Shown: in pieces, positions 5,654 through 63,340 of the stretch
Numbering within the stretch: position 1 is the stretch's first letter
Layout of the letters: each line of letters begins with the position of its first letter
Assembly: GCF_000007005.1 (NCBI RefSeq)
Contig: NC_002754.1
Length of the DNA stretch: 64,000 nt
Reading direction: 5' to 3' (one strand)
Source: Saccharolobus solfataricus P2
GTDB lineage: Archaea > Thermoproteota > Thermoprotei_A > Sulfolobales > Sulfolobaceae
Program-made: the position numbers and the translations under genes
The notes under the pieces: model-generated
Databases searched by the model: none
What the model was told of the DNA's origin: nothing
Seen by the model: only the letters and a program-made list of their open reading frames with translations

Positions 5654-5990
5654 GGAAAGTAATTTATACCCTATTTGCTGAATTTGGGTGGGGAAAGTTA
5701 AGTATTATTATTTGGAATTCACTCTTGGTAATACAGATCTCCTCACCTAAAATTTTTCCTTTCAATTTGTTGAATTCTTAACACTATAATTTACTCTATT
5801 ATCCTTTATAAGCTGGATATTAATTAACTGATATTGTTTTTTTTTTTGTAAAAAGATTTTGGGTCTACCGATGAGGACGGGTTAGCTCACCTCTTACTTT
5901 CTTTAAACTAATCAGAAGTTTAAGGCGAATTCATGGCTAACTTAACGCCAATTTAAAAAAAGGTTTATAAAATCTATAAAGAAATATAAA

Positions 5991-6653: not shown

Positions 6654-6787
6654 AAATTTTTTACATGTACGTCGTTGGACTTCCGCTTGGAGGGTTTCTG
6701 GAGGTGTTGATGGGGTAGTATATTGTTTGGACACTCAATCCCTCCTACTTGAAAGCTCTGATCGTATATTCCCCAGGGGTTTGGGCT

Positions 6788-25908: not shown

Positions 25909-26946
25909 ATGATTATAAAACCCGAACCATCACTTAAAGATTTATCCTATATAATTGAGAACGCAGGATTAAAGGCTAGTGATTTACTAAACATGTATAA
26001 GAGAATGCTAATTATCAGATACTTCGAAGAGTCCATAAGGAAAATTTACCATGAGGGAAAGAATCCCTTCAATATGGCATCCGGTAGAATTAGGGGAGAG
26101 ATGCACCTATCAATAGGGCAAGAGGCAGTTGCAGTTGGTACGTTATACGATATTAGAGACGAAGATGTAGTAGTGAGCACCCACAGACCCCATCATCACG
26201 CTATTGCCAAAGGCGTTGACTTAAAGGGATTGGCAGCGGAAATTTTAGGTAAAGCTACTGGACTCTGCAAAGGAAAAGGAGGGCACATGCATCTGTTCGA
26301 TAAATCTAAGAACTTTGCATGTAGCGGAATTGTAGGAGCTTCTTTTCCTCAAGCAGCTGGCGCTGCCTTTGCGTTTAAATATCTAGGAAAAGATAACGTG
26401 GCAATATCATTTGCCGGTGAAGGTGCAGCCAATCATGGTACCTTCGCTGAAACTCTAAATATAGCAAGTGCTTGGGAATTACCATTAATAATAGTTATAG
26501 AAGACAACAAATACGCTGATTCTACACCTAAATCCTTCGTTATGTCCACCACTTTCCATTATCAGAGAGGTTTAGCATATAACGTCCCATCATATCTTGT
26601 TGACGGAATGGATGTAATAGACGTCTACTCAACTTCTAAAAAAGCCATAGAGAGAGCAAGGAAAGGTTTTGGTCCCACATTAATTGAAGCTTTAACTTAT
26701 AGGTATGTAGGACATTTTGAAGGAGACGGAGAGGAATATAGAACTAAAGAGGAAGTGGAGTTCTGGAGCTCATTAGATCCTATAAGGAGATTAGAAAACA
26801 GACTATTACGTCTAAATTACGCTGACAGCGACATTCTAGCTAGACTCAGAGAGGAGGCAAGAAAGCAAGTTCAAGAGGCAATAGATTTCGCAATAAATAG
26901 TAAGTACCCAGAGCTAACTGACGCATTCGGAGGTGTCTTCGCATGA
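25909..26946 (+). CDS. pdhA: 2-oxoacid/acetoin dehydrogenase E1 alpha subunit
   Basis: HLSIGQEA, THRPHH, GEGA...N TPP motif, TYRYVGHFEGD. Confidence 0.9.
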   Translation: MIIKPEPSLKDLSYIIENAGLKASDLLNMYKRMLIIRYFEESIRKIYHEGKNPFNMASGRIRGEMHLSIGQEAVAVGTLYDIRDEDVVVSTHRPHHHAIAKGVDLKGLAAEILGKATGLCKGKGGHMHLFDKSKNFACSGIVGASFPQAAGAAFAFKYLGKDNVAISFAGEGAANHGTFAETLNIASAWELPLIIVIEDNKYADSTPKSFVMSTTFHYQRGLAYNVPSYLVDGMDVIDVYSTSKKAIERARKGFGPTLIEALTYRYVGHFEGDGEEYRTKEEVEFWSSLDPIRRLENRLLRLNYADSDILARLREEARKQVQEAIDFAINSKYPELTDAFGGVFA

Positions 26947-27941
26947 AAATAAGGGGAATCGCACAAGCCATTGCCGAGGGAATAAGACAAGAGATGGAGA
27001 GAAACGACAGAATTGTGGTACTGGGAGAAGACGTAACATATTGGGGGGCAGTCTTCGGATTTACTATGGGACTTTTTGATAAGTTTGGAAGAAAAAGGGT
27101 TATCGATACACCCATTACTGAACAAACATTTATGGGCATTAGCGTTGGCGCTGCTTCCTCTGGCTTACACCCAGTTGTTTCATTAATGTTCGTAGACTTT
27201 CTAGGTGCGGGATTCGATCAAATGTTCAACCATATGGCAAAGAATTATTACATGAGTGGAGGTCAATATCCCATGCCAATTACTGTAATTACGGCAATAG
27301 GAGGAGGTTATGGTGATTCCTCACAGCACTCACAAGTTTTATATTCACTCTTCGCCCACTTACCAGGATTTAAGGTGATAGTACCTTCAACACCATATGA
27401 CGCTAAAGGTCTTACAATTAAGGCACTAAGAGACAACAACCCAGTCATAATATTCGGACATAAACTATTAACTGGACTACCATTTTTACCATTTGAAGGG
27501 AATGAAGAAGAGGTCCCAGAAGAACCTTATGAGATCGAATTCGGCAAAGCAGCCATCAGAAAAGAAGGAACTGATCTAACCATAATTTCCGCCGGCTTAA
27601 TGGTCCATAGAAGCTTGAAGGCTGCGGAAATGCTACAGAAAGAGGGAATTTCAGCCGAAGTAATAGACGTAAGAACGTTCGTCCCGTTAGATGAAGAAAC
27701 CATAATAAAGTCAGCTAGGAAAACCGGAAGAGTGCTAATTGTAGACGAAGACTATATGAGCTATGGTGTAACTGGAGAGATAGCATTCAGAATACAGTCT
27801 AAGGCATTAAAGGATCTTAAAGTCCCCATATCCAGGCTTGCAGTTCCAGACGTTCCAATACCCTTTTCAGAGCCTTTAGAAAATGCGGTAATACCCAACG
27901 TAAATACAATCTACAGTGAAGCGAAAAAGTTAATCCAATAA
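26943..27941 (+). CDS. pdhB: 2-oxoacid/acetoin dehydrogenase E1 beta subunit
   Basis: LGEDV, DTPITE, HSQ, EVIDVRT; ATGA overlap with alpha. Confidence 0.9.
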   Translation: MKIRGIAQAIAEGIRQEMERNDRIVVLGEDVTYWGAVFGFTMGLFDKFGRKRVIDTPITEQTFMGISVGAASSGLHPVVSLMFVDFLGAGFDQMFNHMAKNYYMSGGQYPMPITVITAIGGGYGDSSQHSQVLYSLFAHLPGFKVIVPSTPYDAKGLTIKALRDNNPVIIFGHKLLTGLPFLPFEGNEEEVPEEPYEIEFGKAAIRKEGTDLTIISAGLMVHRSLKAAEMLQKEGISAEVIDVRTFVPLDEETIIKSARKTGRVLIVDEDYMSYGVTGEIAFRIQSKALKDLKVPISRLAVPDVPIPFSEPLENAVIPNVNTIYSEAKKLIQ

Positions 27942-28339: not shown

Positions 28340-28729
28340 TCAAGCTTCTCCCCTCAAAGTCCCTAGATATTCCCTGATTATCAGTATGTATGCCTTCTCT
28401 TGTGGGGTTAGTTTGCTCTTTCTCCCTTGTTCTTTCTTGATCTTGACGAACTTTGCCTCCTCCAAGTCTTGCCTTAGCTCTCGACCGAATCTCCTTAATC
28501 TGGCTAACCTCTCTTCTTCGCTCTCCTCAGAGTTCTCTATCTTACTGAGCCTACTTTCCTTGTACAACTTGATCAAGTCCTCTATTGACTCCTTGAAATT
28601 GTCGAAGTCTTTCTGAGTTAACTTCTTATTCACTAGTGCTTTCAGAAAGTTTATAGCTTTAGGCAAAGGATATACCACTAGATCATAGTCTAAGAACTTT
28701 TCCAAAATACTAACGTGTTCATAATACAA
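28340..28729 (-). pseudogene. Transposase N-terminal remnant with an in-frame SM1 insertion
   Basis: KKEQGRKSKLTPQEKAYILIIREY resembles a transposase N-terminus; family uncertain. Confidence 0.55.
28634..28712 (-). mobile_element. SM1-type MITE (copy 2)
   Basis: 79 bp, reverse complement of copy 1 with few changes; AC/AC flanks. Confidence 0.9.
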
Positions 28730-29395: not shown

Positions 29396-30034
29396 GGGAG
29401 TGTTCTCATGCAGTCATCTTATTCAAGAAGTATTAGTAAAATTATATCAAGTTTATCTAATATACTGTACTTCCTTCAAGTAAGCCTCGTTCAAGGGAGT
29501 TCCCTCTCTTGAAAACACGCGAGGGTACATTACATTTGACAAGGCTAAACTGTACTCCGCCATTCTTATACTCCTATTAACAGCTTTAGTATCCCTAGCC
29601 AGCCTCGCCAACCTACACCAAGAATTATGACTCTCCACAAGATAAGTATACTTCTTACCCGCTACACGATTATCGAGAACTTGATAAACACAGTAGTAGT
29701 CAGTATAGTTTACCTCACTCCTAGTTAACCAACCCAAGAGATAACGAAAAGTCCCATAACTCCTATCCCCAAACTCGTAAAAAGGCACCCCATCAGCCAG
29801 GACTGTCCAAATCCACAAATCCTCCCTCATCACCCCATACACTAGTATTTTGGAAAAGTTCTTAGACTATGATCTAGTGGTATATCCTTTGCCTAAAGCT
29901 ATAAACTTTCTGAAAGCACTAACGTTCTAATCTATTGGCTGCATCTCGATTAAAACGACTAATTGTGAAAATTTCTAGTTTGATTTAATTTTACTATATA
30001 ATATTGAATAAGATAGCTGCATGAGAACACTCCC
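29396..30034 (-). mobile_element. Internally deleted IS1-family element (ISC1173-like); transposase remnant 29453-29842
   Basis: Both ends GGGAGTGTTCTCATGCAG. GDRS...YTDY...ESHNS...LARLARDTKAVNRS match the IS1 C-terminus. Confidence 0.8.
29843..29921 (+). mobile_element. SM1-type MITE (copy 3)
   Basis: 79 bp, AC/AC flanks. Confidence 0.9.
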
Positions 30035-30053
30035 AAAATAGTCATTTTGGTGG

Positions 30054-30872
30054 TTACCATTTTATAAAGTAAGTCCCATAATCTGGTTGCCACAGTTCTA
30101 ATGTAATTTTATTTCTATCTGCCGCTAACCTATGTTCGCTTTGTATCTCTACTCCCTCATGAGGCCCATCTAAGGTGACTACTAAAACTTTTTCCGCCTT
30201 CACGTTTTTTGGAACCCATGGTAGATTTATCGTAATCTTTGCATAATAGGTGGGTTGACCTATTGTGATCCCTTCCATACTGTAATTCATATTGTATCTT
30301 CTATAAAGCTCTTCCATAGTTGATGGAAAGTATTTTTCATCCCAAGTATAGAACCCGTATTTTATCAATTCCCCTACCTCTAACGGGGGATCAAATGTTA
30401 CGCGGAATTTAATGAGCTTAGGATCTACCTCTTTTTCCCACTTACCTTCACCTCTTTTATTCTCATCCAGCAGATTTTTCCTAGTTATCTTATTAAACCT
30501 TATTACTTTAGAGGCTTTTTCCGCGTTGAACCTATTGGATTGATGAATTCTTTCCTTAACCCCGTTAACTAAAGGAGTTGCTTCGAAGTTTATTCTTAGA
30601 GCTCTATCTCCTTTAGGAGAGGCACTGCATATCTTATTTATGTTAAGGAATAGGAGATATTTATCTCCTTCAGAGTATACCTTACCCTTAGTTATCGTAC
30701 CGTTCTTTAAACCTATTATATTTAGCTTACTCAGCCCATTTAGTATTCTTTCTATTTCTGTTCTATTCATTCTTATCATTATCTCGTTTATGTTAACGTC
30801 CTCATTATCAATGCCAACTTTCTTAAGTAGTGTTGCTATGAGTTTTTTTGAGGCTAAGGAAAGTTCTCCCAC
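30054..30872 (-). CDS. Putative HTH-like regulator with uncharacterised C-terminal beta domain; paralog of 41406-42197
   Basis: Helical N-terminus; C-terminal GELIKYGFYTW...PT...QPDYGTY pattern shared with the paralog. Confidence 0.65.
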   Translation of the reverse strand: MGELSLASKKLIATLLKKVGIDNEDVNINEIMIRMNRTEIERILNGLSKLNIIGLKNGTITKGKVYSEGDKYLLFLNINKICSASPKGDRALRINFEATPLVNGVKERIHQSNRFNAEKASKVIRFNKITRKNLLDENKRGEGKWEKEVDPKLIKFRVTFDPPLEVGELIKYGFYTWDEKYFPSTMEELYRRYNMNYSMEGITIGQPTYYAKITINLPWVPKNVKAEKVLVVTLDGPHEGVEIQSEHRLAADRNKITLELWQPDYGTYFIKW

Positions 30873-31079
30873 ACCTTAATATTCTTAAAGCGTGTTATAA
30901 AAGTGTTGCTAAGTCCTCTATGTTGGAAACAAAATGCGGAAGTTGAAACCAAATTAAAATTAGATTAACTATCAGTTAATATTAATATTAAGTTATAAAC
31001 AATTAAAAGGTAAATATTAAGTAAATCTATAAAATTTAATAGGAAACATTTATATTTTAAAGGATACTACTAAAGATAC

Positions 31080-31931
31080 ATGATGATGGAGAAAATAGTA
31101 ATGGTTGCTATATTGATTTTATCAATCATTTCACTGCCATTGACTATAATATATCCTCACGCTTCTTCATCTCTTCATTTAGGTCCTCAAAGAATATGCT
31201 TTAATATAACGTCAAACAATTACGTAAGTGCAGTATATAAGCCGATAATTCAAGTTTTAAACTTAAATGCTAGGCCAAACTCAACCGTTAATATAACCTT
31301 AAGTTTAACGAATTCGTCAATGCCTATGATGCTTAAAGTACCTAAGTTCAATCTATTAGGATATACTTTAGGTGGCAAACTGGTGACAATCAACGTGAAC
31401 CCTTTAGGATCTCTCTGTTACGGCATACCTGATCTATCGATTTCAACACCCGTTTTCTCGGCAGGTGTTTATATGGTTTTCAGCGGGTATATAACTGGTG
31501 TTTTGTCTTTTTCTGGAAATATTTCCAAACCATTATTAATAAGACTTACAGATGCGGGAAACTTAAGTATACCTATTAAAATTCCTCTCCATGCTTCTGG
31601 TAAAGGAATTATAACGCTATCTAATATTACCTATCATGTAGCTATAAGCCTAGTTGTTAAATATTCTTCACTGCTAAACTCTGGGAATTATACTATACTG
31701 CCTCTAAAGCCTATAGGGAACTTTAAGGGAGTCCCGTCCTATATTAATGGAATTTATGTTATTGAAAGCAATTCTTACATGACCCTTCTTATCCTTTACT
31801 TGTATATTGTGATTGCAGTCGGGATGATTATAGCTATAATTGTCAAATTTAGGAGGAAAATAATACATATTATTACATTCCTCAAGCACTTCGTGAAACT
31901 TACAAACCCATGCTTAGATAAACCAAAATAA
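31080..31931 (+). CDS. Secreted, C-terminally anchored surface protein
   Basis: Signal peptide, N-glycosylation sequons, C-terminal TM + KFRRK. Confidence 0.75.
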   Translation: MMMEKIVMVAILILSIISLPLTIIYPHASSSLHLGPQRICFNITSNNYVSAVYKPIIQVLNLNARPNSTVNITLSLTNSSMPMMLKVPKFNLLGYTLGGKLVTINVNPLGSLCYGIPDLSISTPVFSAGVYMVFSGYITGVLSFSGNISKPLLIRLTDAGNLSIPIKIPLHASGKGIITLSNITYHVAISLVVKYSSLLNSGNYTILPLKPIGNFKGVPSYINGIYVIESNSYMTLLILYLYIVIAVGMIIAIIVKFRRKIIHIITFLKHFVKLTNPCLDKPK

Positions 31932-32169
31932 TAGAACCTAACCTCAATTCAAGAGCGTAGGTATAATGAATGTAGCCTTTTTCATAATAGTTTCAAAAGG
32001 ACTAGTTTTAACTTAAGATGTTAAAAATGAGTTAGTAATAGAAACAACAAGAAATATTTTGTATTAGGGAATATCATTTTCCTTCGCGTCTATTAAGAAA
32101 AAGGCTATAATTGCTCGCACTCCTTCTTAAGCATACATATTTATATATAACTTAAAACTACTTGTTTAT

Positions 32170-34011
32170 GTGAGCTATAGGACATTACTCTCAATAATTG
32201 TGATAATATTGGTAATGATTTCTTCCTTTTCCATATTATGTATAATAATATCTAATGCAGAAATTACTATTAACAATAATATTACAGATTCAAATAATAT
32301 TTATATGGCCCCTAATTTTTTTGGTGCCGATCCCGCTATGATCTTTCCCTATAATAGTACAATGTTGGGAATTATTCTAGCAGGCGGTGGTGGTCCAGAG
32401 CTTTCTGTAAGTCAAGTATATAATTTATCGTATCCTTATAATCAAGTCATGTTTAATTATCCGGAAAATGGACCTTTAGAGTTAAATATGTCTTATGATA
32501 ATTGGTCCATTCATGAAATATCATTCATAGCTCTACCAACTGTAGATGTTTATCCTACGAAAATATATAACTCTTCACTTTATCTTGGTAAGGGACTACT
32601 CTCCGCTACCTATAAAAATATCGCTATCATAATTATTTCTTATAAAGATTTTTCCAAATATAATATAACTCTTAGTCAGTATCCTTCCCATATTCTTCAA
32701 GGAACGGATGGCATAGGTTTATTTATAATTCCGCTGCAAGCATTACCATGGGTTTATGGGAAAAGTGTTAACTCATCCGTGATCCAACAGACCTATATTT
32801 TTCAAAACGAGACAAATTTAATAATTAACGGAAATGATTTTGGGTCTTTAACTCAATTGGGTCTTTATGATGAATTATCATCAACTGTTCAAACTTTAGA
32901 GTTTTTAAACACTACTTCACCTTATTCAAGTATATTAATTGATTCGATAAATAACACTATAGAAGCTATGGCAAATCGATTTACCATTGATAACCAAACC
33001 ATTGATAATTCAATTATTGACCTGGCCTATAGTTCGTCAACATTAACTCCCGGAGAACAAGAATTTTACGCTTACATAGTGAGTTTCGGTGGCAATATTA
33101 CTACTAAAATAGAAAGTGAAATCTATTCAATTTTACCTAAATTAGTTAATTTAATACAGTATCCCAGTATCTCAAATCAATCTCCAACCACAATAGTTTC
33201 GGTGTTTAATGTTCTGAATAGATCAGCTACTAAAGTACCTGGTGTTGTATATGGATTACTTTACAATTCTACTGGATTAATTTCAAAATCTATAATGAAT
33301 TCTAATGGTGAGTTAGTATTTAATGTTTCTCCAGGTACGTACGTACTTTACGTCTACCATTATCCAAACTTAGGACTTAATTATACAGAATATTGGGGTC
33401 AAATTAGAATAGATGTCAGATCTGGTATAAATAAATATAATTTTACTAGAGTTGAGCCGTGGATTTACAATATAATCGATACATCGATAGATTCTCAATT
33501 TAAGATATCTGTGAAAATTATTAATCCATTAAATCAAACAGTTAGCGGGCAGCTATATTTATGGATAAGTAACGGAATCGCATCCTCAGCTAGCGCTCCA
33601 ACATTTGAAAGTCAGTTGCTCTTAAATCCTGGCGTAAATTCTATTAATTATACTTATACAGCCTCAAGTAGTGGTTCTTACTATGTTTACGCAGTTTTGA
33701 AATCTTTTGTTTTAAATCCTGAAGGAGAGCCAATAACCACTGATCAATATAATTGGACTAGTATGGGAGGTATAAATATAAGTAATACGCCTACTCAAAC
33801 TGTAACTACAACGTTTACGGTTACCCAAACCACTGTAAACCGGCAAACTATCACCTCTACCGTTACCCAGACAAGCGAAGGTACCACCACAGTAGTAGTG
33901 GTTAATAAATCTTTAAGTGCTGGAGCAGAGCTATTAATTATCACTATATCTATAATAATTATTGTAATTATGGGAATTATAATAATTCTGTTCCTAAGAA
34001 GATCTAAGTGA
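32170..34011 (+). CDS. Cell-surface glycoprotein with Ig-like domains, Thr-rich stalk and C-terminal TM
   Basis: Signal peptide, NGELVFNVSPGTYVL Ig-like pattern, TVTTTFTVTQTT stalk, TM + RRSK; 613 aa. Confidence 0.8.
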   Translation: MSYRTLLSIIVIILVMISSFSILCIIISNAEITINNNITDSNNIYMAPNFFGADPAMIFPYNSTMLGIILAGGGGPELSVSQVYNLSYPYNQVMFNYPENGPLELNMSYDNWSIHEISFIALPTVDVYPTKIYNSSLYLGKGLLSATYKNIAIIIISYKDFSKYNITLSQYPSHILQGTDGIGLFIIPLQALPWVYGKSVNSSVIQQTYIFQNETNLIINGNDFGSLTQLGLYDELSSTVQTLEFLNTTSPYSSILIDSINNTIEAMANRFTIDNQTIDNSIIDLAYSSSTLTPGEQEFYAYIVSFGGNITTKIESEIYSILPKLVNLIQYPSISNQSPTTIVSVFNVLNRSATKVPGVVYGLLYNSTGLISKSIMNSNGELVFNVSPGTYVLYVYHYPNLGLNYTEYWGQIRIDVRSGINKYNFTRVEPWIYNIIDTSIDSQFKISVKIINPLNQTVSGQLYLWISNGIASSASAPTFESQLLLNPGVNSINYTYTASSSGSYYVYAVLKSFVLNPEGEPITTDQYNWTSMGGINISNTPTQTVTTTFTVTQTTVNRQTITSTVTQTSEGTTTVVVVNKSLSAGAELLIITISIIIIVIMGIIIILFLRRSK

Positions 34012-34279
34012 TCTCTTAATTAATTTAATTATTGGATATGTACTAAATTTTATAAATCATTAATAATATTCTGAGAGTATAGAATTTTATCCCATATAAG
34101 ATGTGATTGGGAACTTTTCTTATTATAGTAAAAATTTCTAGTTCCATTATTAACTTATGCTGTAATTTGTATGCATACATACAGATAATTAATGTCGTAG
34201 CAATTATCATATCTTCCCTTGATAATACCAGAAACCTTGTACGTCCTAGAAAGTTTTTAACCTTCAAGTCCACTTTATG

Positions 34280-34443
34280 GGGAGATTCAGATATCCGTTG
34301 CGAATTCACTTTATTTCAAAGATTACTACGAAATTAACTAAATGAAGATGATTAACTAGCAGAGATACACGATTATCAATATTAACATTTTTACAACCGC
34401 ATTATTTACAAATTACAATTCGCAAAGGAGACTTGAGTTGCTC
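34280..34443 (+). mobile_element. ~164-bp MITE (SM4-sized), diverged
   Basis: Colinear with 28071-28234. Confidence 0.7.
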
Positions 34444-34562
34444 TAATGTTGTCATATACATCGAAATTAGTTCCAGAACAACGTTGCTTTGGAACCATTT
34501 GATATAAGATATATATAAATAGCAGATAGAGTAGAAAGAAACTAATAAGGGGATGAAAGGTA

Positions 34563-37500
34563 ATGTTAGAAGTAGTATATATAGTAGGAGCATTTGGATC
34601 ACCGTTGCTAACTCCGCCTACGTTGGCAGTAGCTGGTTTCCTTATCGCTGTGCTTATGGGTCTAGAATATGGTGTATTATGGGTTCTAACTGGAGAATCT
34701 TTAAATAGAGAACTAATATTAGTTATATCAAATATAGTTTACTCGATAGCGTGGTCTATTACTGCACTACCTTTTACTCCAATATATTATACACTTCAAC
34801 CTTATTTTTCTCAACCTCTCCTCATTTACCTTTATCTAGCACTTTTCATAGGTTCTATATTGCTTGGTGTAATCCCAGCTATAATGTATATAAGAAAATA
34901 TTTACAATTTAATAAAATACAAAAGGAATTTAAACAGTTAGAACTAGATTATAAATCCATAAATCAAGAATATAGTGAAATTAATACGAGACTTAATAAA
35001 GCTAAGGAGGAAATCAATAATGTCATGGATAAGATTAATAAAGCTAAGGAATTACATGAAACCGCACTTAGGGATCCAGACTTAATAGTTACGGCACTTG
35101 ATAAAAAACCTGAGATACCAGAGGTTATAAGACCTAATGTAAATTACGTAGTAGCAGGCTTAGGAGGTACTGGAACAGCGCTATTGGAGGCACTCATAGA
35201 TTATTTAGTTTCAAAAAACGTCATTAAGGAAGACGGGACTAATCCTTTCTTATTCGTGGCTTTTGATACGAACCAAGCAAGTATTGCGAGACTGAGGAAA
35301 AAGTATGAATATACACCAGTTGGAAAACTATTGTATACCTTTAATAACTTTGAGGCACTCACTACAGCTAATATAATAAGCCATAATCCTTGGCTTGCTG
35401 GGTTAAACGTTGATGTAATTCAAGGCTCTGGAATGAAGAGAGCTATAGGTTATGCATCTTATAATACGGTGAAGGAAGCCATGATGGAGGATATCCTCAG
35501 AAGGTTAAGTGATTTAATTGCCAAAACGAGAACTAATCGTATATTTTTAATAGTATTTACCGCTTTAGGAGGAGGTACTGGTTCTGGCTCATTCATTCAT
35601 TTTACGAAGGACTTTATAAGTAGGCTAGGTAGGATAACTGGAGATTCAGAACCTTACGTGAGAGTGTCCGGAATGTAATTATCTGAACGAATAGATAAAC
35701 AGAATGATAAATATTAATATTGCCAGAAGGGTAGGACCTGGATCACCGAGAAAAACTTATAATGGAAAAATATCAAGACGAGAGGATTTACCTATCGCGC
35801 ATAGCGTTGCCTGATCGCGAGGAGGCGCGTCTCAGAGCTGAACGGCTCTACGTCCTGGAGGAGTCCTCCGTTGGATCGCGAGGAACATCTTGATGTTGTA
35901 GATCACTCCCAGGACGTGAAGGAAGACGTCGTTCCTCCAGGTCGTGGTCCCGTAGGGCCTCCAGAACGCGTTCAGGTAGGTGCCGAAGAACTCCACGTGG
36001 GCCCTCAGGGTAGTGAAGGGCTTCTCCCGCGCTATGAGCTGTGTCGGGGAGGGAGAGAATCCCCTGTCCGCGATCTTAATCCCCTTGAGCGGTGACTTGA
36101 ACCTCTTGTCCGAGAAGTTGGCCGGCTTCACCGTGATGGACCTCACGAAGAGGGAGACGGAGATCACGGCTATGGCCTTGAGCCCGTAGTGCGAGACCCC
36201 TCTCTTCTTGGTCCACCTTCCCTCGAACCTCCTCTTGGTTCTCCCCAGGGAGAGCAGCTTCCTGGCCCTCTCCAGGTTACCTTCCCTCCTCTCCAGCTCC
36301 GCCTTCTCCCGAAAGGTCTCCACGCTCCTCTTCCCAGGAGGTAAGTCCAGTAGGAAGGAGTCCACTAGCCACGCCATGAAGTCCACGAGATGCGCGCTCG
36401 CAGGGAGGTAACTGGGTAGGCACTTCTCCTCAAGCTTGAAGGAAATCTCCAACAACTTCTTCCTCACCCCGTACAACCTGCCCACGAAGTCGTGCAGCGT
36501 GCTCTTCCCCACCTTCCTCCCCACGAACCAGGCCACGACCACGTTCACGTTAACCATTTTCACCGCGTCCCTATAGGAGCAAGAGTAGAGCACCATGACG
36601 ATTAACAACTTCAAGTAAACCAGCGCGCCCTCGCCCAGAACCCTCTCCAAATCCATGGCGTCCAGCACGGGCTTGATCTCCGTTAACCATTTTTCCCTCC
36701 ACGGCATATCCTCTATTGGGGGAAGAGGGTAGTACATCAGGTTTGGTATGTGTCTTAATGTTCTTGCCATGGTACTACCCTCTACTCCCATAACTTAAGT
36801 GTTACTCCAATTTAATCCAAGATAATGCTAAAAACCAATTTATTCTTGCCAATAAAAATTCAATTTTTTACATTCCGGACACTCTCACGTGATGGGATTC
36901 GGCGTGCTACCTAGAGGAAATGAAGGTAAATTATTTCACGTTAATGCATTTTCCGCTATAAAGGAAATGCAGTTTATACTTAAAAATGGCGTTAGATCAA
37001 AAGATGAGAAGGCAAGTAGCGGAGCAGAAAATACTATAAATCTCATTAATCCCTTCTTAGCATTTTTCATTATAAGTAGAGATAGACCCGTTAGAGATAT
37101 AGATACTAATATAGCGGTAGGTCTAGCGAGATTTATATCGGATATAGGTACTTCTGGCGTAGTTGAAGCAAATCAGCAAAGTAAATATGCTGAGACTTTC
37201 GATCTCGGAGATATTAAAACTAAAGCTGCAATGTCTCCGGATTCCTTCTTCACCTTCAACAGATATGACATTTATTTCCCTGCTTCAAGAATATCGTGGT
37301 ATAAAAACGTAGGAGTTATTGTAGTTAATGACATTAATTCTAGATATGCTAAATTAAGGGAAGAGTTAAATGAAATTTCGAGACTCTTATCTGGATACAA
37401 GGATAATATCTCGAAGTTTTTAGCGAATTTAGATAACCTTAACAATACCGTTAAATCCATGACTGTAAAGGTGTACAGAAGATGGAGCAATAGAATAGGC

Positions 37501-38907
37501 GAAACACATACTCAACTTCTAAAGTGGAGGGCGGAAGTAGTAGAAGGAGGGAGTATATCACCTAAGAACCTTGAGACTCCATTAAATAGCATGAATAGCT
37601 CTACTGAAGAAAACGTTGAGAGTATAGTAATCTTAAAGAGGAGAATAGATGAGTTCAATGAGATTGTGAAGGAAGAGGAGTCATTTTTAAAGAGTCCTCC
37701 TGCAAGCCAGATAGAGTACGTCTTTCCAGTTAGAGAACTTGAGAATTTTAACGTATCCCAGTTATCCACGGACAAAGCATCACTTTATAGACTAATCGAG
37801 GAGTATAGGAGAAAAGACGAATTCTTAAGAGCTTTAGCAGACTTAAAAGCTCCACTAGGTTCAGTAGGGCAGACAATGGCTAATATCGATTACCAGAAAA
37901 TTAACGTTCCTATACCCATAACTACCGAGGCTAAAGAATTCATTTCTAAGTACAATTCTGGCTTAATAAAGCAGAATGCAGTAGTATCCCCCGATATAGC
38001 TAGCGTATTGATGGTTACTGCATCAATGCAGGATAATATAAACGTTAATGATTTTCCTAATCCAGAAACCCTTAAACAAGCGTTAGAGAGTAAGACTCGC
38101 AATCCAGACGCTAAAATGGGCTATATCAATTCAAAAAGATTTAGTATATCCACATATCACATAATAAATGGTGTTTACATATGGAGAATATCTAAAAATA
38201 CCCCTCCTATTCTAAGGGATTTAACGTACCTCATAGAGGATTATGAGGCTGTTAAGAACGAAAACTTTGGAGAGTTAATTTACCATCATACATTGTTTTA
38301 TAATGATCCTCAGACCTTTGAAGCATTAACGGGAGAACAAATAGCCAATTTATCCCCTAATCAAGCAGCTTGGAGGATAATAGAATTTTGGGCGAACTAT
38401 AATCCAGAAATAGAATATATTAATATTTGGGGAATTATAGAATTAGCCGGCGTATATAGTGATCTTAAAATTATTAATAATAATATTGATAATTTAATGG
38501 AATTACTTGACGGAGCTATAAAGAGTTTACAAAGGGGAGTAACTAACGTAGATGTGGTTAAGGTAAAGAAATATTTAGATGCAATAACCTCGGCAAAAGT
38601 TCCATCTTCAGAAAACGTTAAGGCAATCTACGAGGCTAATAAAATAGCGAATAAAGACGAGGTGAATAGAGGTCTCAAAGAGATAGCCGATTTAAGCCTA
38701 CAAATACTCTCAAAACTGGAAGACATAAAGGTGAGATACGGTCAAAAATGGATAGATGATCTGAATAAGTTAAAGAAGGAATCCACAGATTACGGTATAA
38801 ATAGGATTATACAAACCCTTATAAATCACACTGATACGTTAATTACTAAATCAGAGAGTTTAAGTGAAGATCTCAATAAATTCGTGGAATCCATAACCTT
38901 AGAGTGA
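34563..38907 (+). pseudogene. Membrane-anchored tubulin/FtsZ-like GTPase (~1037 aa), split by an IS
   Basis: GLGGTG, AFDTN, GSGMKRAIG, ALGGGTGSG before the IS. 34563-35659 + 36891-38907 = 3114 nt, in frame (PYVMGFGVLP). Confidence 0.88.
35660..36886 (-). mobile_element. IS5-like element (ISC1234-like ends); transposase 35832-36791
   Basis: 1227 bp, perfect 19-bp TIR GAGAGTGTCCGGAATGTAA, 4-bp TSD ACGT, DDE motifs (LVDS, IADRGF, HVEF); visibly GC-richer than the host gene. Confidence 0.9.
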
Positions 38908-38913
38908 ACTAAA

Positions 38914-41409
38914 TTGTCCTCCTCATTCGATCCTGAGAGATCCCTACTAGATTTTTTCAAATCCAATAACAGCGAGCAAACGTTCTATATTTTGAAGGGA
39001 CTTTATGAAATATATAAAAGTAAAGGTTATACTGAGTTCCTTAAGGATATTACTGGTCTAATTAATTTAGTAGCGAAATATGAGACTATGCTATCCATAA
39101 GTTCTAACACTAAAGGTAATTTAAAGAAAATAAAGGATATGTTGGAGAGGTTAAATATAGACGTGAAAGAACTGGAGAGATTATCAAAAAGTATTGCCTC
39201 TGACCTCATTAATAACATAAACGATGTTTGTATTTCAATTCAAGGTTACTATAATGATAAGAAACTACCCATGGTTTTCAAATATAGCTGCCATGAAATG
39301 TTACCAGATCCTTATAATGCTGACCATAACTACCCCGCTAGGTTAAAGTATTTCTTGACAACAGTTCTTAGAATGAGGAATTCTTACGAATCAACAGTTA
39401 GATTCTCTACAGATTTAATAGATTACTATTCTAAAAAATTGGGATATGATATATCAAATATAAAGGACTTTTCCGAGAAATTAAGATTCGTAACTAACTC
39501 CCTTCTGGATCCTTCTTTCATATCAACCCTTCAAGGAATTACTAAAGTTCTGATGGATTCAACCGAGTATTTATGTGTAATATCTTATTACTTAACACCT
39601 CAAAAAATTAGAGGCAAGAAACCCTCAACAATTATAGAATACGAGCCATTAATAGATAATATTATTAAATACTCATCATACTTCCTAAGATTTATTTTCG
39701 AAAAAACTGACAGATTTCTAAATTTTATTCCATCAGCTGGCCTAAACTTAACTGAATTAAGGAATATAGCCAATCAAATGCTCGAAATACTCTCTAAAAT
39801 TAACCTAAATGTTTTAGAATCTTATCTTACAAATCAAGGAGAGTTGAAACTATCTCAAATTTATACTGGAGACCTACTATTCTTTACCTTCTTTAATTTA
39901 GCTGATGCATTAAATATTTATGATGATTACATATATAAAATCAGAAACGCAGTACTTTCCGTACCTTTAGAAAATAGGATCGCAATAACTAGAAGTATTC
40001 TCGGATTAAAAGATGTTGAGGATATTAATATGAGCTGTAGAGATGTACATAATTTTATTCTAAATATGAATGAAATCTCAAATGAAATTTATTCTGGTGG
40101 AAATATTGCAGAATTAATAGATAGTCTGCGAAAGTACGTTTTCATAAGGGATTCTATAAATTATGCTTTTAAAGATGTAGCACTATTAATGCAGAACGTA
40201 CTATACTCTAAAGAAATCACGTATTTAAGTATGTCCCTTCACGTAGAAAACTACATACATAATACCTCAGCCATAGAATTACTTGATAGAATTAGAATAG
40301 ATTATAATGATTATAACCGATTAATTAATAATTTACATGAGTTTAGGGACTGGATTAACGTACTCAAAAAGCTCGATTTAGATCAAAAGTTGTCTGAATC
40401 TCTAGTCAAGGTAGTGAGCGGGGATCCTCCAACTAATAGTAAAATGAGTTTGGATGAAGTAATAGGAAAGATAATTAAGAGAGAACAAGCTAACGTTGAG
40501 GAAGTTAAAGGAACTGGAATATACGAATTTAGAACAGACAATAGGGTAATAAGAGCCATGCCCGTTATATACGATATGTGGAAGGAAATAGGAGATGACG
40601 GGATAGAATATTCCCATTTAGTAAATTGGTTAAGTAAGAGATTAGATATTGATGATGATAGAAAAGTTAATGAGATAGCAATAAAATACTTAAATGCGTC
40701 ATATTATGCAGGGTTAATAAAACTTGAAGAAAAACCGACAACTAAGCCTCCAGATACTGAACAAACTCGTAAAAGAGAAATCACGATTAACGCAATAGGT
40801 ATCCCTACTGGAGCAAGATGGAAATTCATACTCGCACGGGAAAATAAATATCTTAATTTCGATACAAACGAAAGTTCGATAAGGATTAAAGCGCAAGAAA
40901 AAGATAATCTAACTTTCTATGATGTTACGATAGGCAATGTTATATATGTACCCTATCCTAGGACGTATACCATTAGATCTAGTGATTTATCAAAAGGCGT
41001 GTTAGACGTAAAATATAATGTATCTTCCCCTCAATCAAGTCAAAGGACTGGAAAAACTAATGTGCAAACTAATGTAAAGATTTCCAAACCCAAGGGAACT
41101 GCAACCGCAGGTGTTATATTATCAATAGTATATATTATCGAACTAATAGTAATTGCAAGTGGATTCCAATACTCTAACATTCTATTTGAAGCATTAACAG
41201 TAATGGACATATTCTTTCAGTTAGCAATAATGGGATTACTAGTATCCGCTGTAACTAACCCCTATAACTCCCATAAAAAAGGTTCATATATTATCATAAT
41301 ATCGATAATAATGTTCTTCTTTTCAATCCCCATAATAGAATATGTGATATTCTTCATTATATTTGATATTGCAGTTGGAATTTCATTAGCAAGATTTAAA
41401 CGTAGGTGA
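38914..41409 (+). CDS. Large helical protein with Ig-like segment and ~3 C-terminal TM helices
   Basis: 831 aa; starts 6 bp after the tubulin-like gene; GIPTGARW Ig-like motif; hydrophobic C-terminus. Confidence 0.8.
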   Translation: MSSSFDPERSLLDFFKSNNSEQTFYILKGLYEIYKSKGYTEFLKDITGLINLVAKYETMLSISSNTKGNLKKIKDMLERLNIDVKELERLSKSIASDLINNINDVCISIQGYYNDKKLPMVFKYSCHEMLPDPYNADHNYPARLKYFLTTVLRMRNSYESTVRFSTDLIDYYSKKLGYDISNIKDFSEKLRFVTNSLLDPSFISTLQGITKVLMDSTEYLCVISYYLTPQKIRGKKPSTIIEYEPLIDNIIKYSSYFLRFIFEKTDRFLNFIPSAGLNLTELRNIANQMLEILSKINLNVLESYLTNQGELKLSQIYTGDLLFFTFFNLADALNIYDDYIYKIRNAVLSVPLENRIAITRSILGLKDVEDINMSCRDVHNFILNMNEISNEIYSGGNIAELIDSLRKYVFIRDSINYAFKDVALLMQNVLYSKEITYLSMSLHVENYIHNTSAIELLDRIRIDYNDYNRLINNLHEFRDWINVLKKLDLDQKLSESLVKVVSGDPPTNSKMSLDEVIGKIIKREQANVEEVKGTGIYEFRTDNRVIRAMPVIYDMWKEIGDDGIEYSHLVNWLSKRLDIDDDRKVNEIAIKYLNASYYAGLIKLEEKPTTKPPDTEQTRKREITINAIGIPTGARWKFILARENKYLNFDTNESSIRIKAQEKDNLTFYDVTIGNVIYVPYPRTYTIRSSDLSKGVLDVKYNVSSPQSSQRTGKTNVQTNVKISKPKGTATAGVILSIVYIIELIVIASGFQYSNILFEALTVMDIFFQLAIMGLLVSAVTNPYNSHKKGSYIIIISIIMFFFSIPIIEYVIFFIIFDIAVGISLARFKRR

Positions 41410-42197
41410 TAGGTATGGAAAAGAAAAACTCAATAAATATATCATTATTAGAAAATTTAGCAAATTTTTTCTCCATAGGGGAAATAGAAAAGGGAGAACT
41501 AAGAGCAAATTCAGAAATAATTAATTATCTTTTAGAACAAGGTCTAATAAGACAAATAGAGAGAAATTTTATAGTAGATGAACTGCTCAAATTTATTATA
41601 TTAAAATATAGTAATATAGTAAAATTAAAAATGTCTAAAGACTATTTAGTGAAGACTCAATCAATATATATACTCTTAATGATAGTAGACGAGAATTATC
41701 ATAAAATACCTTTTTACGACTATATTGCGTATAGCGGACTGGTTAAGATAAAAAAGAAGAGAATTGCAAGGAGTGTAATAAGAAATGGTAAAAAGATCAT
41801 CAATAATAATCAAGGCGAAATACATTTAATGAAATATCAAAAAAATAAAATAAAGGCTGAGATTAACCTAGATCAAACGAAGTCTGGAGAGATAATTGAA
41901 TTCGGCTTATATATATGGAATAGGCCATCTAAGCTAAGTTTAATGGGAGATAAGACCTTTAGCCAAAACTATTTCTGGATATACGCTCCTACCTTAGAAT
42001 ACTCCACCAAAATACTTCTCGAAAATAATCTAAATGTAGAATCGATAAACCTAGAAAGGTTCTTATATCTAGATGACAACCATCAAATTAAGGCACCAAT
42101 TAAAAATCAATATATGCTCAGAAAAGAAAAAAATTATATTGAGATAAAAGTGCATTATCCTGATTATGGTATATATAAACTATCGTACAATTTATAA
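41406..42197 (+). CDS. Putative HTH-like regulator, paralog of 30054-30872
   Basis: GEIIEFGLYIW...PT...YPDYGIY; overlaps the upstream stop (GTGA). Confidence 0.7.
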   Translation: MIGMEKKNSINISLLENLANFFSIGEIEKGELRANSEIINYLLEQGLIRQIERNFIVDELLKFIILKYSNIVKLKMSKDYLVKTQSIYILLMIVDENYHKIPFYDYIAYSGLVKIKKKRIARSVIRNGKKIINNNQGEIHLMKYQKNKIKAEINLDQTKSGEIIEFGLYIWNRPSKLSLMGDKTFSQNYFWIYAPTLEYSTKILLENNLNVESINLERFLYLDDNHQIKAPIKNQYMLRKEKNYIEIKVHYPDYGIYKLSYNL

Positions 42198-42560: not shown

Positions 42561-42890
42561 TGGGGTGTTCTAATGCATCCATCTTATTCGATAATAAATA
42601 ATAAAATTATATCAGATTAGAAATTTTCACAATTAGTCGTTCCGAATCCAGATGCAGCCAAAGGAATTAGAACGTGAAAACAGCCTCTGAAAAAGGTTTA
42701 TGTGCAAGGATTACGAAATCTTTTTGTAGTAGTACTTGAATGGATCTCGCGAACTCTTGCACATAAGTTTTTCTAAAATAATGTCTTTGTTCAAATTTCT
42801 ATATCTTAAACGTTAAACGAGCGTTTTTCATATTACTCCAATATTTTTACAAATGTTTTTTGAATTTCATGACTGTTTGAGAACACTCCC
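42561..42890 (-). mobile_element. 330-bp MITE, second copy, followed by an extra terminal repeat (to 42948)
   Basis: Diverged reverse complement of 17504-17833. Confidence 0.85.
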
Positions 42891-43213
42891 AACTTGATAT
42901 AATTTTACAAATAATTTTAGAATTTCATGATTGCATGAGAACACTCCCAATTCAAAGAAATCCAATTTTATTTATATCATCAGATACATATAATTAAATT
43001 TTAGACTATATTAAAAACAGAGTAAATTTTCTTATATTTGAAGAAACAATATGATAATCCTAGCTGAATTTATATTTGTAAGACGATTTTGGATCTACTG
43101 AGAAGGGGCGAGGCTTGTCTTTTCTGTGTCAAAAGAGTTTGAAACTGAAGTAGAAAGTCGTATCTTAAGTACTCGAGTTAAGTTTAAAGTCATGCTATAC
43201 ACTTTTTAATACT

Positions 43214-43995
43214 GTGATTTATACTTTACAATTCCAACTGAAAATCTCGAATGACGTAATTGTCCCCCTTTCACATCTAAACTCAGTAGGACCTTGTTCC
43301 TCTCCTTCTCCCCAACTTACTCAAAGATCACTGAAAGCAAGGAACCACACAAACCCTTAAGAATAACCGTAATAAAAGATCACGGCAAACCCTTATATTC
43401 CACGGGTAAAAATAAAATAGTGCTAAAGACTGAAAACACATACACATTTACCGTAAATACCCTATTAGAGGATGTGGTAAAGGAAGTGGTAAAGACCGAG
43501 AGTGTCAATAAGGAAATTTACAATACGAAATTTCACGTTGAGCTGGAAAACATTATAGTCAAAGAGGAGTTTAAGATTAATGATGCCAGATTCTACAAAA
43601 TTCACTTTAAGACCCCAACACTCCTACAACCCCCGAGACCTAGTATCAAAAGAAAAGGCAATAGATACGTCTTGTTCCCTTACGTTCCACTCCTCTTTTA
43701 CTCCATAGCCTCCCATTGGAATAGATACATGAATAACAAGATAGTTGGAGTAACTGGTAGCAAAACCCTATATTATTTTAGAGAAGTAAATTACAAGATA
43801 AGGCCTCTAACCGCATATTATGGGAACATACCTAATAAGGGATTTGTGGGATGGGTTTTATTTGAGTTAAAAGCTAGGAAGGGAAGCAATTTAAGGGAAA
43901 ACATCAGAAGGCTCTTAGATTACGCAAATTACTTCGGTATAGGAAAAAGCAGAAATATAGGTTTTGGAGAAGTAGATGTAAGACCTTTGGAATAA
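43214..43995 (+). pseudogene. cas6: Cas6 endoribonuclease with a -1 frameshift in a C5 run near 43264-43268
   Basis: G-rich loop [14 protein letters not shown]-terminus (GTG 43214) [18 protein letters not shown] joins PFTSKLSRT only if one C is added. Confidence 0.85.
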
Positions 43996-44114
43996 TATTA
44001 AAGATATCTTATTTGATTTCTTAAAGATCTATCATGCTGAATTATTACAGAATAGGTAACTTAATTTGATTAAATTAATGCATATACGTTTATCATTAGT
44101 TTTCCTCCAATTTT

Positions 44115-44268
44115 GGGTGATTCAAGGATCCTTGCGATTTCAATTTGTTTCTCTAAAAACAGATAAGAATAATTGATTCGACATTTTCGATAATACTAAT
44201 AAGAGACGAGGGAATGTTCTCATGCAGTCATCTTATTCGAGAAGTGTTAGTGAAAATATATCTGATTA
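44115..44268. mobile_element. Fragments of an SM4-sized MITE end and an ISC1173-type end
   Basis: GGGTGATTCAAGGATCC... followed by GGGAATGTTCTCATGCAGTCATCTTATTC. Confidence 0.6.
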
Positions 44269-53200: not shown

Positions 53201-53316
53201 ATGTTGAAAAAGAACTATTGGGAGTACCTACATTTATACTTCATAAGCTATTCAACGAAATTAATGTTAAAGGGAATAGGAATAAATATATTGCATCATT
53301 AATATTGTTTATATAA
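50221..53316 (+). CDS. Large protein with two P-loop-like motifs and a helical C-terminal half
   Basis: GGLPFSGKTT (aa ~22) and VGPLRSAKSS (aa ~283); 1031 aa. Confidence 0.75.
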   Translation: MRRIFKAEQIEEMLSNRNKVFIGGLPFSGKTTLINKFYNKHKNEEIQFIELPKKFNSTDELNEWKNKIKGIRRGIIEGRTYIIELLLGKVSIATTPSLQSPYLDFRGNAVSMRSIDAIKRIYKNGIKDDKVVSKILMYSTITTPNYFTIIPKLVNEGIELYKQGKLDKVLEIVLGVKRLYSSFPKIDINGEDSITYALGSVLPRNIDFKTAWSELSETWKELVYYRLDSALRLLPGSAEKIIGQKDIKPLGDKVEVVDIEPFFVDLVEWGKSIILDGNNLCIVGPLRSAKSSLANYIYSMVNSKDVSLLDYNNYDLLSLDKKIKSENKKYIAVLTDDIFYSIPVECKVIESRSYIKDFIDYLYLKNNVRRVKGANPNVPIHYYYLYKLKYNMSDEQIYNEYKSDMNKYITNTIFGNNKELINNYLSLLILGKKYLLLPVKVSEIVLNSLNKQIDKTFINWFSVFDFTDYDVDANEEMEKAVYEALYKVREELIRVVKENRFEEDLLKVYFDAISRYPTDNDTRIDEFIKTGYGHYSPIVYLLLYNPDIIEEFNWDLGERVNQACSSLKSLEDIIWKGITSSKDIVDKLLEEVMNFAEYKPSNYASIYEILSSENVNIECLRKAFNILKWYISTLDDRLVFLKFENKLYNVILKTKDDKLINYYLKMSFKGTTRSAIYINPEHISKIAEISDNARLEALPLVILNKAINDEKEIDKIIDPIETYAALLAIMRLEIDAIAEGKIETIIKYYRYLDELYDKFVKKDVRKIDEKVLFTLYDIAFDLNVNEKREILDFLAEEKEFVDSGYGLIMFYYYKVKDNLKEVLDYITTLIEPYYNLLIKIRRMYNDEDVYELFEAYKIKLAKTLITSRYDYKLVLQDIIDLLSKANISDRALKRRILGAYYISKFLLYGEAKKIKVRGPEEILYRVALALTGNEEMKKEFYKTVENMEINDKLIVENLDYTLENLASNDYLIPILEIYFYLKGDNEKLSKVMKYVEKELLGVPTFILHKLFNEINVKGNRNKYIASLILFI

Positions 53317-53761: not shown

Positions 53762-54901
<1,140 letters not shown>

Positions 54902-61400: not shown

Positions 61401-61959
61401 TTGAAACTGACCCGTATATCCGAATTTACGATTAATCCCAAAAGGAATTGAAAGGTATTATTCTCATAATAGGAACCGCCCTAGTGTATGCTAGATTAAT
61501 CCCAAAAGGAATTGAAAGCGTGATTACATGGAACATTACTTTTCCACCGAATATTGATTAATCCCAAAAGGAATTGAAAGTTTATGTTTTCGAGTTCTTC
61601 TGGTCTTAACATCACTCTAGATTAATCCCAAAAGGAATTGAAAGGTCAGTTATACGCTACATATGAAAAGATAAATGAAGGATTAATCCCAAAAGGAATT
61701 GAAAGATCTCTCTTAGTTTTGTCAAAGCTTCTGACCCGCTCCTGATTAATCCCAAAAGGAATTGAAAGTCTATCTTTATTGTTACAACTTTTGCATACGA
61801 CATAATTTGATTAATCCCAAAAGGAATTGAAAGTCCTCTATCATCTCCTTTAAGCACTGTGTAATCTCACTTGATTAATCCCAAAAGGAATTGAAAGTAA
61901 TACTGCAGTAACGGTACAAGTCATTGACAGCGCTGATTAATCCCAAAAGGAATTGAAAG
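55466..61959 (+). CRISPR. CRISPR array: 103 repeats of GATTAATCCCAAAAGGAATTGAAAG (25 bp), 102 spacers
   Basis: Counted by hand; first repeat 55466, last 61935-61959; no degenerate repeat noticed. Confidence 0.99.
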
Positions 61960-63333: not shown

Positions 63334-63340
63334 TGTATTA

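Follow-up and report, generated by a model that had tools for sequence, protein, structure and literature searches.

A transposon-disrupted FtsZl1 operon and an adjacent surface-protein cassette in Saccharolobus solfataricus P2 carry paralogous, predicted winged-helix/β-sandwich proteins

We analyzed a 64,000-nt stretch of the Saccharolobus solfataricus P2 chromosome (NC_002754.1; hereafter the window, in which genome position equals window position + 1,178,000), where an original prediction had placed a 12-kb module, read as one regulated envelope/cytoskeletal system, bracketed by two paralogous regulator-like genes and containing a tubulin-like gene. The region is SSO1373 to SSO1380, and coordinates and gene sizes agree exactly with the published table, which lists these genes as an FtsZl1 neighborhood and leaves the neighbors unassigned (Makarova & Koonin 2010, PMC2875224, Additional file 5). 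That study gave SSO1376/SSO1378 as its example of an FtsZl1-family member, a tubulin/FtsZ homolog whose gene is "disrupted by a transposon" (PMC2875224). The tubulin-like gene, its disruption, and its list of neighbors were already published (PMC2875224); the earlier statement that the module had no functional description holds, but the gene and its exact neighborhood had been in print since 2010. Our literature search found no experimental function for FtsZl1/Tubulin_2 and no later functional work, and for the SSO and Saci locus tags it returned a single microarray line, in which SSO1373 was transcribed and mildly (1.66-fold) induced by H2O2. Three points are new. SSO1373 and SSO1380 are paralogs in an undescribed winged-helix/β-sandwich family with a confidently predicted fold, SSO1379-type proteins are the constant partner of transmembrane (TM)-anchored FtsZl1 in Thermoprotei, and sequence comparison shows the 12-kb arrangement to be variable, not fixed.

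At the left edge of the region, SSO1373 (30054..30872, − strand), here called regA, encodes a 272-aa, predicted cytoplasmic protein from a family without annotation. An AT-rich divergent intergenic region of 207 bp (30873..31079), which contains the palindromes ATTAACTATCAGTTAAT and TTAATATTAATATTAA and is a candidate operator only, separates it from SSO1374 (surf1; 31080..31931, + strand; 283 aa), and SSO1375 (surf2; 32170..34011, + strand; 613 aa) follows. Both are predicted surface-anchored glycoproteins, the second with a Thr-rich stalk; in agreement with the prediction of two surface proteins, each begins with a signal/TM segment and ends in a TM anchor, and they carry 8 and 24 N-glycosylation sequons, respectively. 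Next come two fragments of the tubulin-like gene, N-terminal SSO1376 (34563..35678, + strand; 371 aa) and C-terminal SSO1378 (36889..38907, + strand; 672 aa), and between them a ~1.23-kb insertion sequence (IS) of IS5 type (35656..36890, − strand) with inverted repeats and the 319-aa transposase SSO1377 (35832-36791, − strand); its name, ISC1234, is that of the published table (PMC2875224). The partner gene SSO1379 (38914..41409, + strand; 831 aa) and SSO1380 (regB; 41406..42197, + strand; 263 aa), a divergent regA paralog of the same architecture, complete the region. The claim that all intervening genes lie on the + strand fails for the transposase, and the claimed spacings of the last three genes, 6 bp and −4 bp, are correct by their coordinates (a gap from 38907 to 38914 between SSO1378 and SSO1379, and an overlap at 41409/41406 between SSO1379 and regB).

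The N-terminal fragment matched Pfam Tubulin_2 (PF13809) with 36.9 bits against a cut-off of 27 (E=3.4e-09) and Tubulin with 5.8e-07. Intact natural homologs, which stood in for the split gene, matched both PF13809 and PF00091. A PDB profile search with FtsZl1 returned FtsZ (1.2e-05) and tubulin. In SSO1376, three TM helices and a coiled coil are predicted, and the GTPase domain shows GLGGTGTA and (AL)GGGTGSGS motifs, so that the T1 G-rich loop and the T4 GGGTGSG signature loop are both present, and GGGTGSGSF is invariant in the homolog alignment; SSO1378 supplies the rest of the GTPase region and a long helical/coiled-coil extension. By these sequence criteria SSO1376/SSO1378 belong to the FtsZl1 (Tubulin_2) family of the FtsZ/tubulin superfamily. 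FtsZl1 is among the most divergent branches of that superfamily, and Sulfolobales divide by ESCRT-III, not by FtsZ, so that its occurrence in this order has long been an oddity. The tubulin-like assignment was thereby upheld, but not as a single gene, as P2 has two open reading frames (ORFs) with an IS between them.

The terminal inverted repeats of ISC1234 are imperfect and 32 nt long (35656-35687 and 36859-36890). The element inserted precisely: in an empty-site comparison with the corresponding locus of Saccharolobus sp. metagenome-assembled genomes (MAGs; locus L001), ACGT occurred on both sides of the element and once in the intact allele, in which FtsZl1 reads ...SEPYVLGFGVLPRG across the insertion site and the frame runs on as ...SEPYV-(M/L)GFGVLPRG. 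Authentic SSO1376 coding stops at ~35659, the final codons and the stop being supplied by the IS, and the reading frame is split at codon ~366, leaving no intact ORF in P2. Over its whole length, SSO1378 can be aligned with residues 368-1039 of the intact L001 protein (1037 aa). Relative to the intact allele, dN/dS was 0.10 for SSO1376 and 0.18 for SSO1378, neither fragment contained internal stops, and neighboring genes gave 0.18-0.25, so that the whole region, at 0.10-0.25, is under purifying selection. Because the fragments lack internal stops and have low dN/dS, the insertion is recent, and it has inactivated the FtsZl1 operon of P2.

Intact FtsZl1 homologs are rare. They formed six protein clusters in a 5.8-billion-sequence collection, a scan of 185,579 species genomes gave 4 loci, 2 of the TM-anchored type, and a metagenome scan gave 4, one a duplicate of L013; a scan of viral contigs returned no FtsZl1 relatives. 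In the Saccharolobus sp. MAGs (91% DNA identity), the gene order is surf1 (−), regA (+), an IS, surf2, the intact 1037-aa FtsZl1, an 840-aa partner, and regB. Sulfolobus sp. B5 (~50% identity) has a 1051-aa FtsZl1, then a 769-aa partner (phmmer 1.5e-99) and, directly after it, a 264-aa regB ortholog (phmmer 1.1e-55); PKD-type surface proteins come next and, further downstream, a 322-aa regA-like protein (phmmer 4.9e-17) and another surface protein. The synteny comparison thus recovered the last three genes as a tight operon conserved in B5. At the more distant loci L010, L014, and L015 (35-39% FtsZl1 identity), the partner gene again lies immediately after FtsZl1, and the available sequence of these three loci contains no regA/regB-type gene. 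The partner directly follows FtsZl1 in every related locus (L001, L008, L010, L014, and L015), the spacing is 6-33 bp in six loci, down to that same identity, and FtsZl1 has 3-4 N-terminal TM helices in all of these loci. Because the distant loci keep the pair without a regA/regB-type gene, the conserved core is FtsZl1 plus the SSO1379-like partner, with regB joining only in Sulfolobaceae, and the minimal unit for study is the TM-anchored FtsZl1 with this partner. The contig of L014 (NZ_JBAMME010000155.1) is labeled as a Thermogutta (Planctomycetes) MAG; its FtsZl1 is 39% identical to the Saccharolobus protein and its partner is of archaeal type, and it is probably a mis-binned archaeal contig. 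A ~380-aa gene after FtsZl1 in the distant loci L011/L012 was considered as a short SSO1379 homolog and rejected (hhalign probability 3.9%).

What is conserved in the partner is a soluble, cytoplasmic, helical domain of ~620 aa, the end of which may be a PqqD-like winged helix. SSO1379 has in addition a β-rich insert specific to its lineage, a linker rich in Ser, Thr, Pro, and Gln, and, at its C terminus, 3-4 TM helices. Sulfolobaceae partners are likewise anchored in the membrane at the C terminus and that of L010 at the N terminus, and those of L014 and L015 have no anchor. No Pfam match and no significant PDB sequence match was found for SSO1379-type partners. Pfam PqqD (PF05402) matched one of six homologs below threshold (E=0.014) and gave nothing for SSO1379 itself; the last ~80 residues of the cytoplasmic domain in SSO1379 homologs, three β-strands plus helices, resemble PqqD/RRE, which we treat as a lead only, and unlike in PqqD systems there are no biosynthesis genes for ribosomally synthesized and posttranslationally modified peptides near the partner. 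In common with the described FtsZl1 family, the Sulfolobales-type protein has an FtsZ-like GTPase domain, a coiled coil, and a long helical C-terminal region (PMC2875224). Euryarchaeal FtsZl1 operons, in contrast, consist of A2, FtsZl1, a membrane GTPase, and A1, and in bacteria FtsZl1 is accompanied by vWA, OmpA-like, or kinase genes (PMC2875224), whereas the Sulfolobales-type operon has no P-loop GTPase, vWA, OmpA-like, or kinase neighbor in Pfam and NCBIfam searches. Instead, it has N-terminal TM helices on FtsZl1 and the SSO1379-type partner, to which Sulfolobaceae add the winged-helix/β-sandwich protein.

The paralogy of regA and regB, which had been put forward as open to refutation, holds. 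The proposed motifs were all present (GELIKYGFYTW in regA and GEIIEFGLYIW in regB, PT in both, PDYGTY and PDYGIY), BLASTP aligned the proteins at E=1e-07 with 28% identity over 134 aa, and phmmer gave ~1e-06 in both directions. A noncircular profile built from 26 regA-type relatives, with no sequence of the regB clade, matched residues 22-260 of regB with 43 bits (E=3.3e-12); among 2000 shuffled regB sequences the highest score was 8.8 bits. Because this match spans residues 22-260, the homology is full-length rather than confined to the C-terminal halves, where the motifs had been noted. Scrutinizing 1.84 billion representative proteins with a shared-domain profile gave 38 matches at E<=1e-3, 22 of them at E<=1e-10; in nearly all 38, the domain is C-terminal and the protein shorter than 400 aa. 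The family occurs mainly in Sulfolobales and Marsarchaeota, with members in S. acidocaldarius, Metallosphaera javensis, Sulfodiicoccus acidiphilus, Acidianus manzaensis, S. islandicus/shibatae, Sulfurisphaera javensis, and Marsarchaeota, and is covered by no model in Pfam, NCBIfam, or PADLOC. In a maximum-likelihood tree, regB grouped with its B5 ortholog, a Sulfurisphaera protein, and one metagenomic protein (support 97/99), and regA with the S. acidocaldarius and Sulfodiicoccus proteins; the regA-like protein of B5 fell on a different, long branch. No further paralogs were found in the window or the loci beyond one or two per locus.

AlphaFold2 gave a confident model of regA from 30 family sequences (predicted local distance difference test [pLDDT] 94.5, predicted template modeling score [pTM] 0.91); an alignment of 5 sequences had given an unusable one (pLDDT 37.5). 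In this model, residues ~1-62 form a winged helix (H5-20, H27-31, H36-48, β52-55, and β58-61; pLDDT mostly >90) and residues ~70-271 one large β-sandwich of ~200 aa, the shared domain for which a structure prediction had been called for; DPPLxxGE, PT, and W-PP are conserved positions of the family. Against the PDB, Foldseek matched the β part with E values of 4e-8 to 1e-5 and a probability of 1.00, at TM-scores of 0.34-0.43 normalized to the whole 271-aa query. Matches were to a DUF3857-type domain (3kd4, E=4.3e-08), ribophorin I/Ost1, the N-domain of M1 aminopeptidase/LTA4 hydrolase, and the VIT domain of ITIH1, and the M1-like match recurred in a viral library. The likeness to these proteins is at the level of fold only (5-12% sequence identity), and regA-type proteins differ from them in being cytoplasmic and fused to a winged helix, where the others are lumenal, extracellular, or part of an enzyme. 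The HEXXH motif is absent from regA and regB, which have no peptidase catalytic domain. In two metagenomic homologs (P0038 and P0039), the β-sandwich is fused to a TIR/DUF4062-like N-domain, with no winged helix (TIR-like E=0.002, sub-threshold). Because the TIR-like domain replaces the winged helix in these homologs, the β-sandwich may be a modular sensing or binding domain used with different output domains, which suggests a modular sensor-plus-output design for the family. At the locus of one TIR-like homolog (L022, 218-1279), radical-SAM, NUDIX, and AdoHcyase-like genes follow, with BilB-like and BilD/ThiF genes nearby.

Most family members elsewhere have no FtsZl1 neighbor: within 7-10 kb of the family genes at L018, L020, and L022-L026, including the regB-clade member of Sulfurisphaera, no FtsZl1 or partner remnants were found. 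In five of seven contexts (a raw count), the neighbors are sequon-rich proteins with a signal and a C-terminal anchor (in S. acidocaldarius a 972-aa PKD protein, in A. manzaensis a protein of 1259 aa, for example) and/or DUF973 polytopic membrane proteins, the latter often divergently oriented. In S. acidocaldarius (L020/L021, 4912-15313), the regA homolog (protein AAY81160.1) lies between two DUF973 genes and the 972-aa surface protein. A GntR + DUF5808 gene pair, which we take to be the YtrA locus, lies ~5 kb away; by numbering from gene order, the regA homolog would presumably be Saci_1854. As S. acidocaldarius is genetically tractable and has this homolog beside surface-protein and DUF973 genes, the hypothesis of a regulator is directly testable there.

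The description of regA and regB as regulator-like proteins with a ligand-binding domain agrees with the modeled fold, in which a winged helix is joined to a separate β-sandwich, a possible sensor domain; neither protein has significant membership of a helix-turn-helix (HTH) family. Like the one-component winged HTH (wHTH) regulators of Sulfolobales (Lrs14/AbfR1, MarR, ArsR, and GntR types, e.g., YtrA), the regA-type proteins have an N-terminal H-H-H-β-β winged helix, are small and cytoplasmic, and are often divergent to membrane- or surface-protein genes. The weak profile matches of the N-terminal domain were all to DNA-binding wHTH proteins (Lrs14-like, 6cmv, E=0.03; FadR; ST1889, 2d1h; ArsR; MarR), single members gave sub-threshold matches to HTH_11 (0.003), TrmB (0.008), and GntR (0.03), and the winged helix is basic in most members (net +3 in regA). 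Unlike the matched wHTH families, none of which has the β-sandwich, the regA type belongs to no Pfam or NCBIfam family and does not conserve the recognition helix. Several observations weigh against a DNA-binding regulator: none of the sequence matches to wHTH regulators reaches significance (E 0.003-1.8), the family shows little conservation of the putative recognition helix, which is often acidic, the winged helix of regB is acidic (net -3, pI 4.8), two contexts (L018 and L024) contain no surface-protein genes, surface-protein genes are common in Sulfolobales anyway, and the 7-3-7 palindrome of the regA-surf1 intergenic region is not preserved in L001. A search for an operator motif shared across the intergenic regions of the module yielded only AT-rich k-mers and nonconserved palindromes.

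Some of these features would equally be expected if regA and regB were structural or adaptor subunits, with the winged helix as a protein-protein interface and the β-sandwich binding FtsZl1, the partner, or envelope proteins, and winged helices of this kind are known in ESCRT-II and CdvB. The acidic winged helix of regB, the lack of a conserved recognition helix, and the absence of a significant match to any DNA-binding family all fit such a role, as does the 4-bp overlap of regB with the partner gene, a sign that the two may be translationally coupled and made in stoichiometric amounts; ribophorin I, the M1 N-domain, and VIT, which resemble the β-sandwich in structure, are moreover protein- or peptide-binding modules within complexes. 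Yet most family genes stand alone, without a conserved partner gene, several are divergent to their neighbors, as is typical of regulators, and the best, if weak, N-domain matches and the basic winged helix of most members point toward DNA. We regard a structural or adaptor role in place of a regulatory one as unlikely.

The two units of the region proved separable. A blastn comparison of L001 with the window showed that 30037-31868, carrying regA and surf1, is inverted in the MAG lineage, where another IS keeps this cassette apart from surf2. Because the cassette is inverted there, the bracketing of the region by paralogs is not conserved even among close relatives, although proximity is kept. 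For surf2, homologs turned up in close Saccharolobus relatives alone; B5 lacks homologs of both surf1 and surf2, and neither gene is conserved outside Saccharolobus. Two direct copies of a ~100-bp sequence flank the inverted cassette (L001 8289-8385 and 11474-11573), each followed by a 70-76-aa ORF starting MELITIDEKAL, and the same sequence lies beside ISC1217 in the window (44112-44210); the rearrangement of the cassette probably involved this repeat as a small mobile element. With the cassette inverted, surf1 and surf2 missing from B5, the FtsZl1-partner pair occurring without regA/regB, and the family mostly far from FtsZl1, the idea of one regulated 12-kb system was not sustained, and comparison of the loci indicates two adjacent separable units instead.

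These results raise the question of whether the juxtaposition has any functional meaning or is a coincidence in a rearrangement-prone region. The latter would account for the inversion, for the IS-separated and poorly conserved surface genes, and for the occurrence of regA-type genes without FtsZl1 and of FtsZl1 and partner without a family member in L014 and L015. It is at odds with B5, where a regA-like gene that belongs to another branch of the family lies, with three surface-protein genes, within 5 kb downstream of the operon; by our own estimate, with one or two family genes per ~2.5-3 Mb, the chance of a distance <10 kb is ~0.01. It also leaves unexplained that regB, a regA paralog, is undoubtedly inside the operon, and we consider mere coincidence highly unlikely. 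What ties the two units together is that regA and regB are paralogs and that the units recur near each other in two Sulfolobaceae lineages. Genes for the α and β subunits of a 2-oxoacid dehydrogenase E1 (25909-27941, + strand) lie ~2 kb from regA, and in A. manzaensis the regA-like gene has an E1β-type gene (L023 1-396) at a distance of ~7.6 kb; this proximity may be a trace of the ancestral chromosomal position of the regA cassette.

Taken as two units, the region can be read as follows, a reading to which we give roughly an even chance of being correct overall: regA-type proteins would be one-component regulators, regB an operon-specific regulator or adaptor, and FtsZl1 with its partner a membrane-remodeling machine. 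The first unit is the operon FtsZl1-SSO1379-SSO1380, encoding a membrane-anchored GTPase, a helical partner, and a winged-helix/β-sandwich protein; the second is regA, divergent from one surface-glycoprotein gene and with a second such gene adjoining. The β-sandwich of regA-type proteins would recognize a peptide, glycan, or protein ligand and their winged helix would bind DNA, thereby controlling neighboring envelope genes. As an operon-specific derivative, regB would autoregulate the FtsZl1 operon or act as an adaptor subunit, and FtsZl1 and the partner would assemble GTP-dependently on the cytoplasmic face of the membrane and so remodel it. The regulatory role is suggested by the modeled fold and gene context, from which we infer also DNA binding and ligand sensing, and polymerization, membrane remodeling, and the link between the units are likewise proposed rather than observed. 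Membrane remodeling by FtsZl1 is itself a 2010 hypothesis (PMC2875224), and the T6-H7 elements of FtsZl1 were not identifiable in that analysis, which speaks against polymerization (PMC2875224).

Alternatively, the FtsZl1-partner-regB operon, possibly with the regA cassette, could be an accessory conflict or antivirus system in which a sensor triggers GTP-dependent membrane remodeling or abortive infection. Consistent with this, its distribution is as patchy and sparse as described above, the operon being absent from the S. acidocaldarius and S. islandicus hits; it is dispensable, because it is IS-disrupted in P2; and β-sandwich homologs are fused to a TIR-like domain beside Bil-type genes in L022. 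Its neighbors also fit: L001 sits among type I-A cas genes, VapBC, and PDC-S01, the window holds Cas6, Csx1, a clustered regularly interspaced short palindromic repeat (CRISPR) array, and an nSTAND3 protein, and L015 has a PDC-M38A/B-like pair and a macro domain. Such guilt by association is weak, however, because variable regions of Sulfolobales gather unrelated accessory genes. In PADLOC-DB 2.0, no component of the module matched any defense model (coiled-coil noise only, E >1e-3), no relatives turned up in the FtsZl1 scan of viral contigs, the TIR-like assignment is sub-threshold (E=0.002), and regA-like genes mostly neighbor surface proteins. The surroundings are compatible, by association only, with an accessory and possibly conflict-related role, and we judge a defense system to be quite improbable. 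A bolder version of the regulator reading, which we hold to be a long shot, is that the winged helix plus ribophorin/M1-N-like β-sandwich represents a new archaeal class of sensor, linking detection of an envelope or virus ligand to the expression or assembly of surface cassettes, and that in Sulfolobaceae the regB branch was recruited as sensor or adaptor of the FtsZl1-SSO1379 machine, which would remodel the membrane in an accessory, possibly antiviral response; if true, this would be the first FtsZl1 function and a tubulin-like system in an ESCRT-dividing archaeon. For any work on FtsZl1, P2 with its broken copy is the wrong strain; a partner homolog is present in the cultured Saccharolobus caldissimus, which has a complete genome, and intact 1037-aa alleles exist in Saccharolobus MAGs.

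The module sits in an IS-rich variable region, with an IS1 fragment at 29453-29842 and ISC1217, IS630-, and IS110-type elements at 44-49 kb, and the predicted adjacency to CRISPR-Cas genes was confirmed. Cas6 (43294..43995, + strand; PADLOC Cas6a, 2.1e-79) marks the start of the CRISPR-Cas/IS-rich stretch, and Csx1 (CARF + HEPN; 53762-54895, − strand), the array (~56990-61580, repeat GATTAATCCCAAAAGGAATTGAAAG), and Csa1 and Cas4 (62458-63898, + strand) lie further downstream, separated from Cas6 by the ISC1217, IS630-type, and IS110-type elements. Between these elements and Csx1, a 1031-aa ORF (50221-53316, + strand) has an N-terminal nSTAND3 NTPase match (Pfam 2.2e-07) and may encode a STAND-type defense or signaling protein. 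The Acidilobus-type FtsZl1-partner pair of L015 has beside it (5394-8591) a fragment of a macro domain (DarG-like, 1.3e-05) and two genes, for an ATPase and a small protein, that resemble the candidate defense system PDC-M38. On the other side of regA, between the E1 genes and the IS1 fragment, a 129-aa ORF (28340-28729, − strand) gave a near-threshold match to the C-terminal winged helix of DUF6293 (9.9e-06), and between regB and cas6 there is a 58-bp tandem repeat of 1.9 copies with 86% match (42841-42950).

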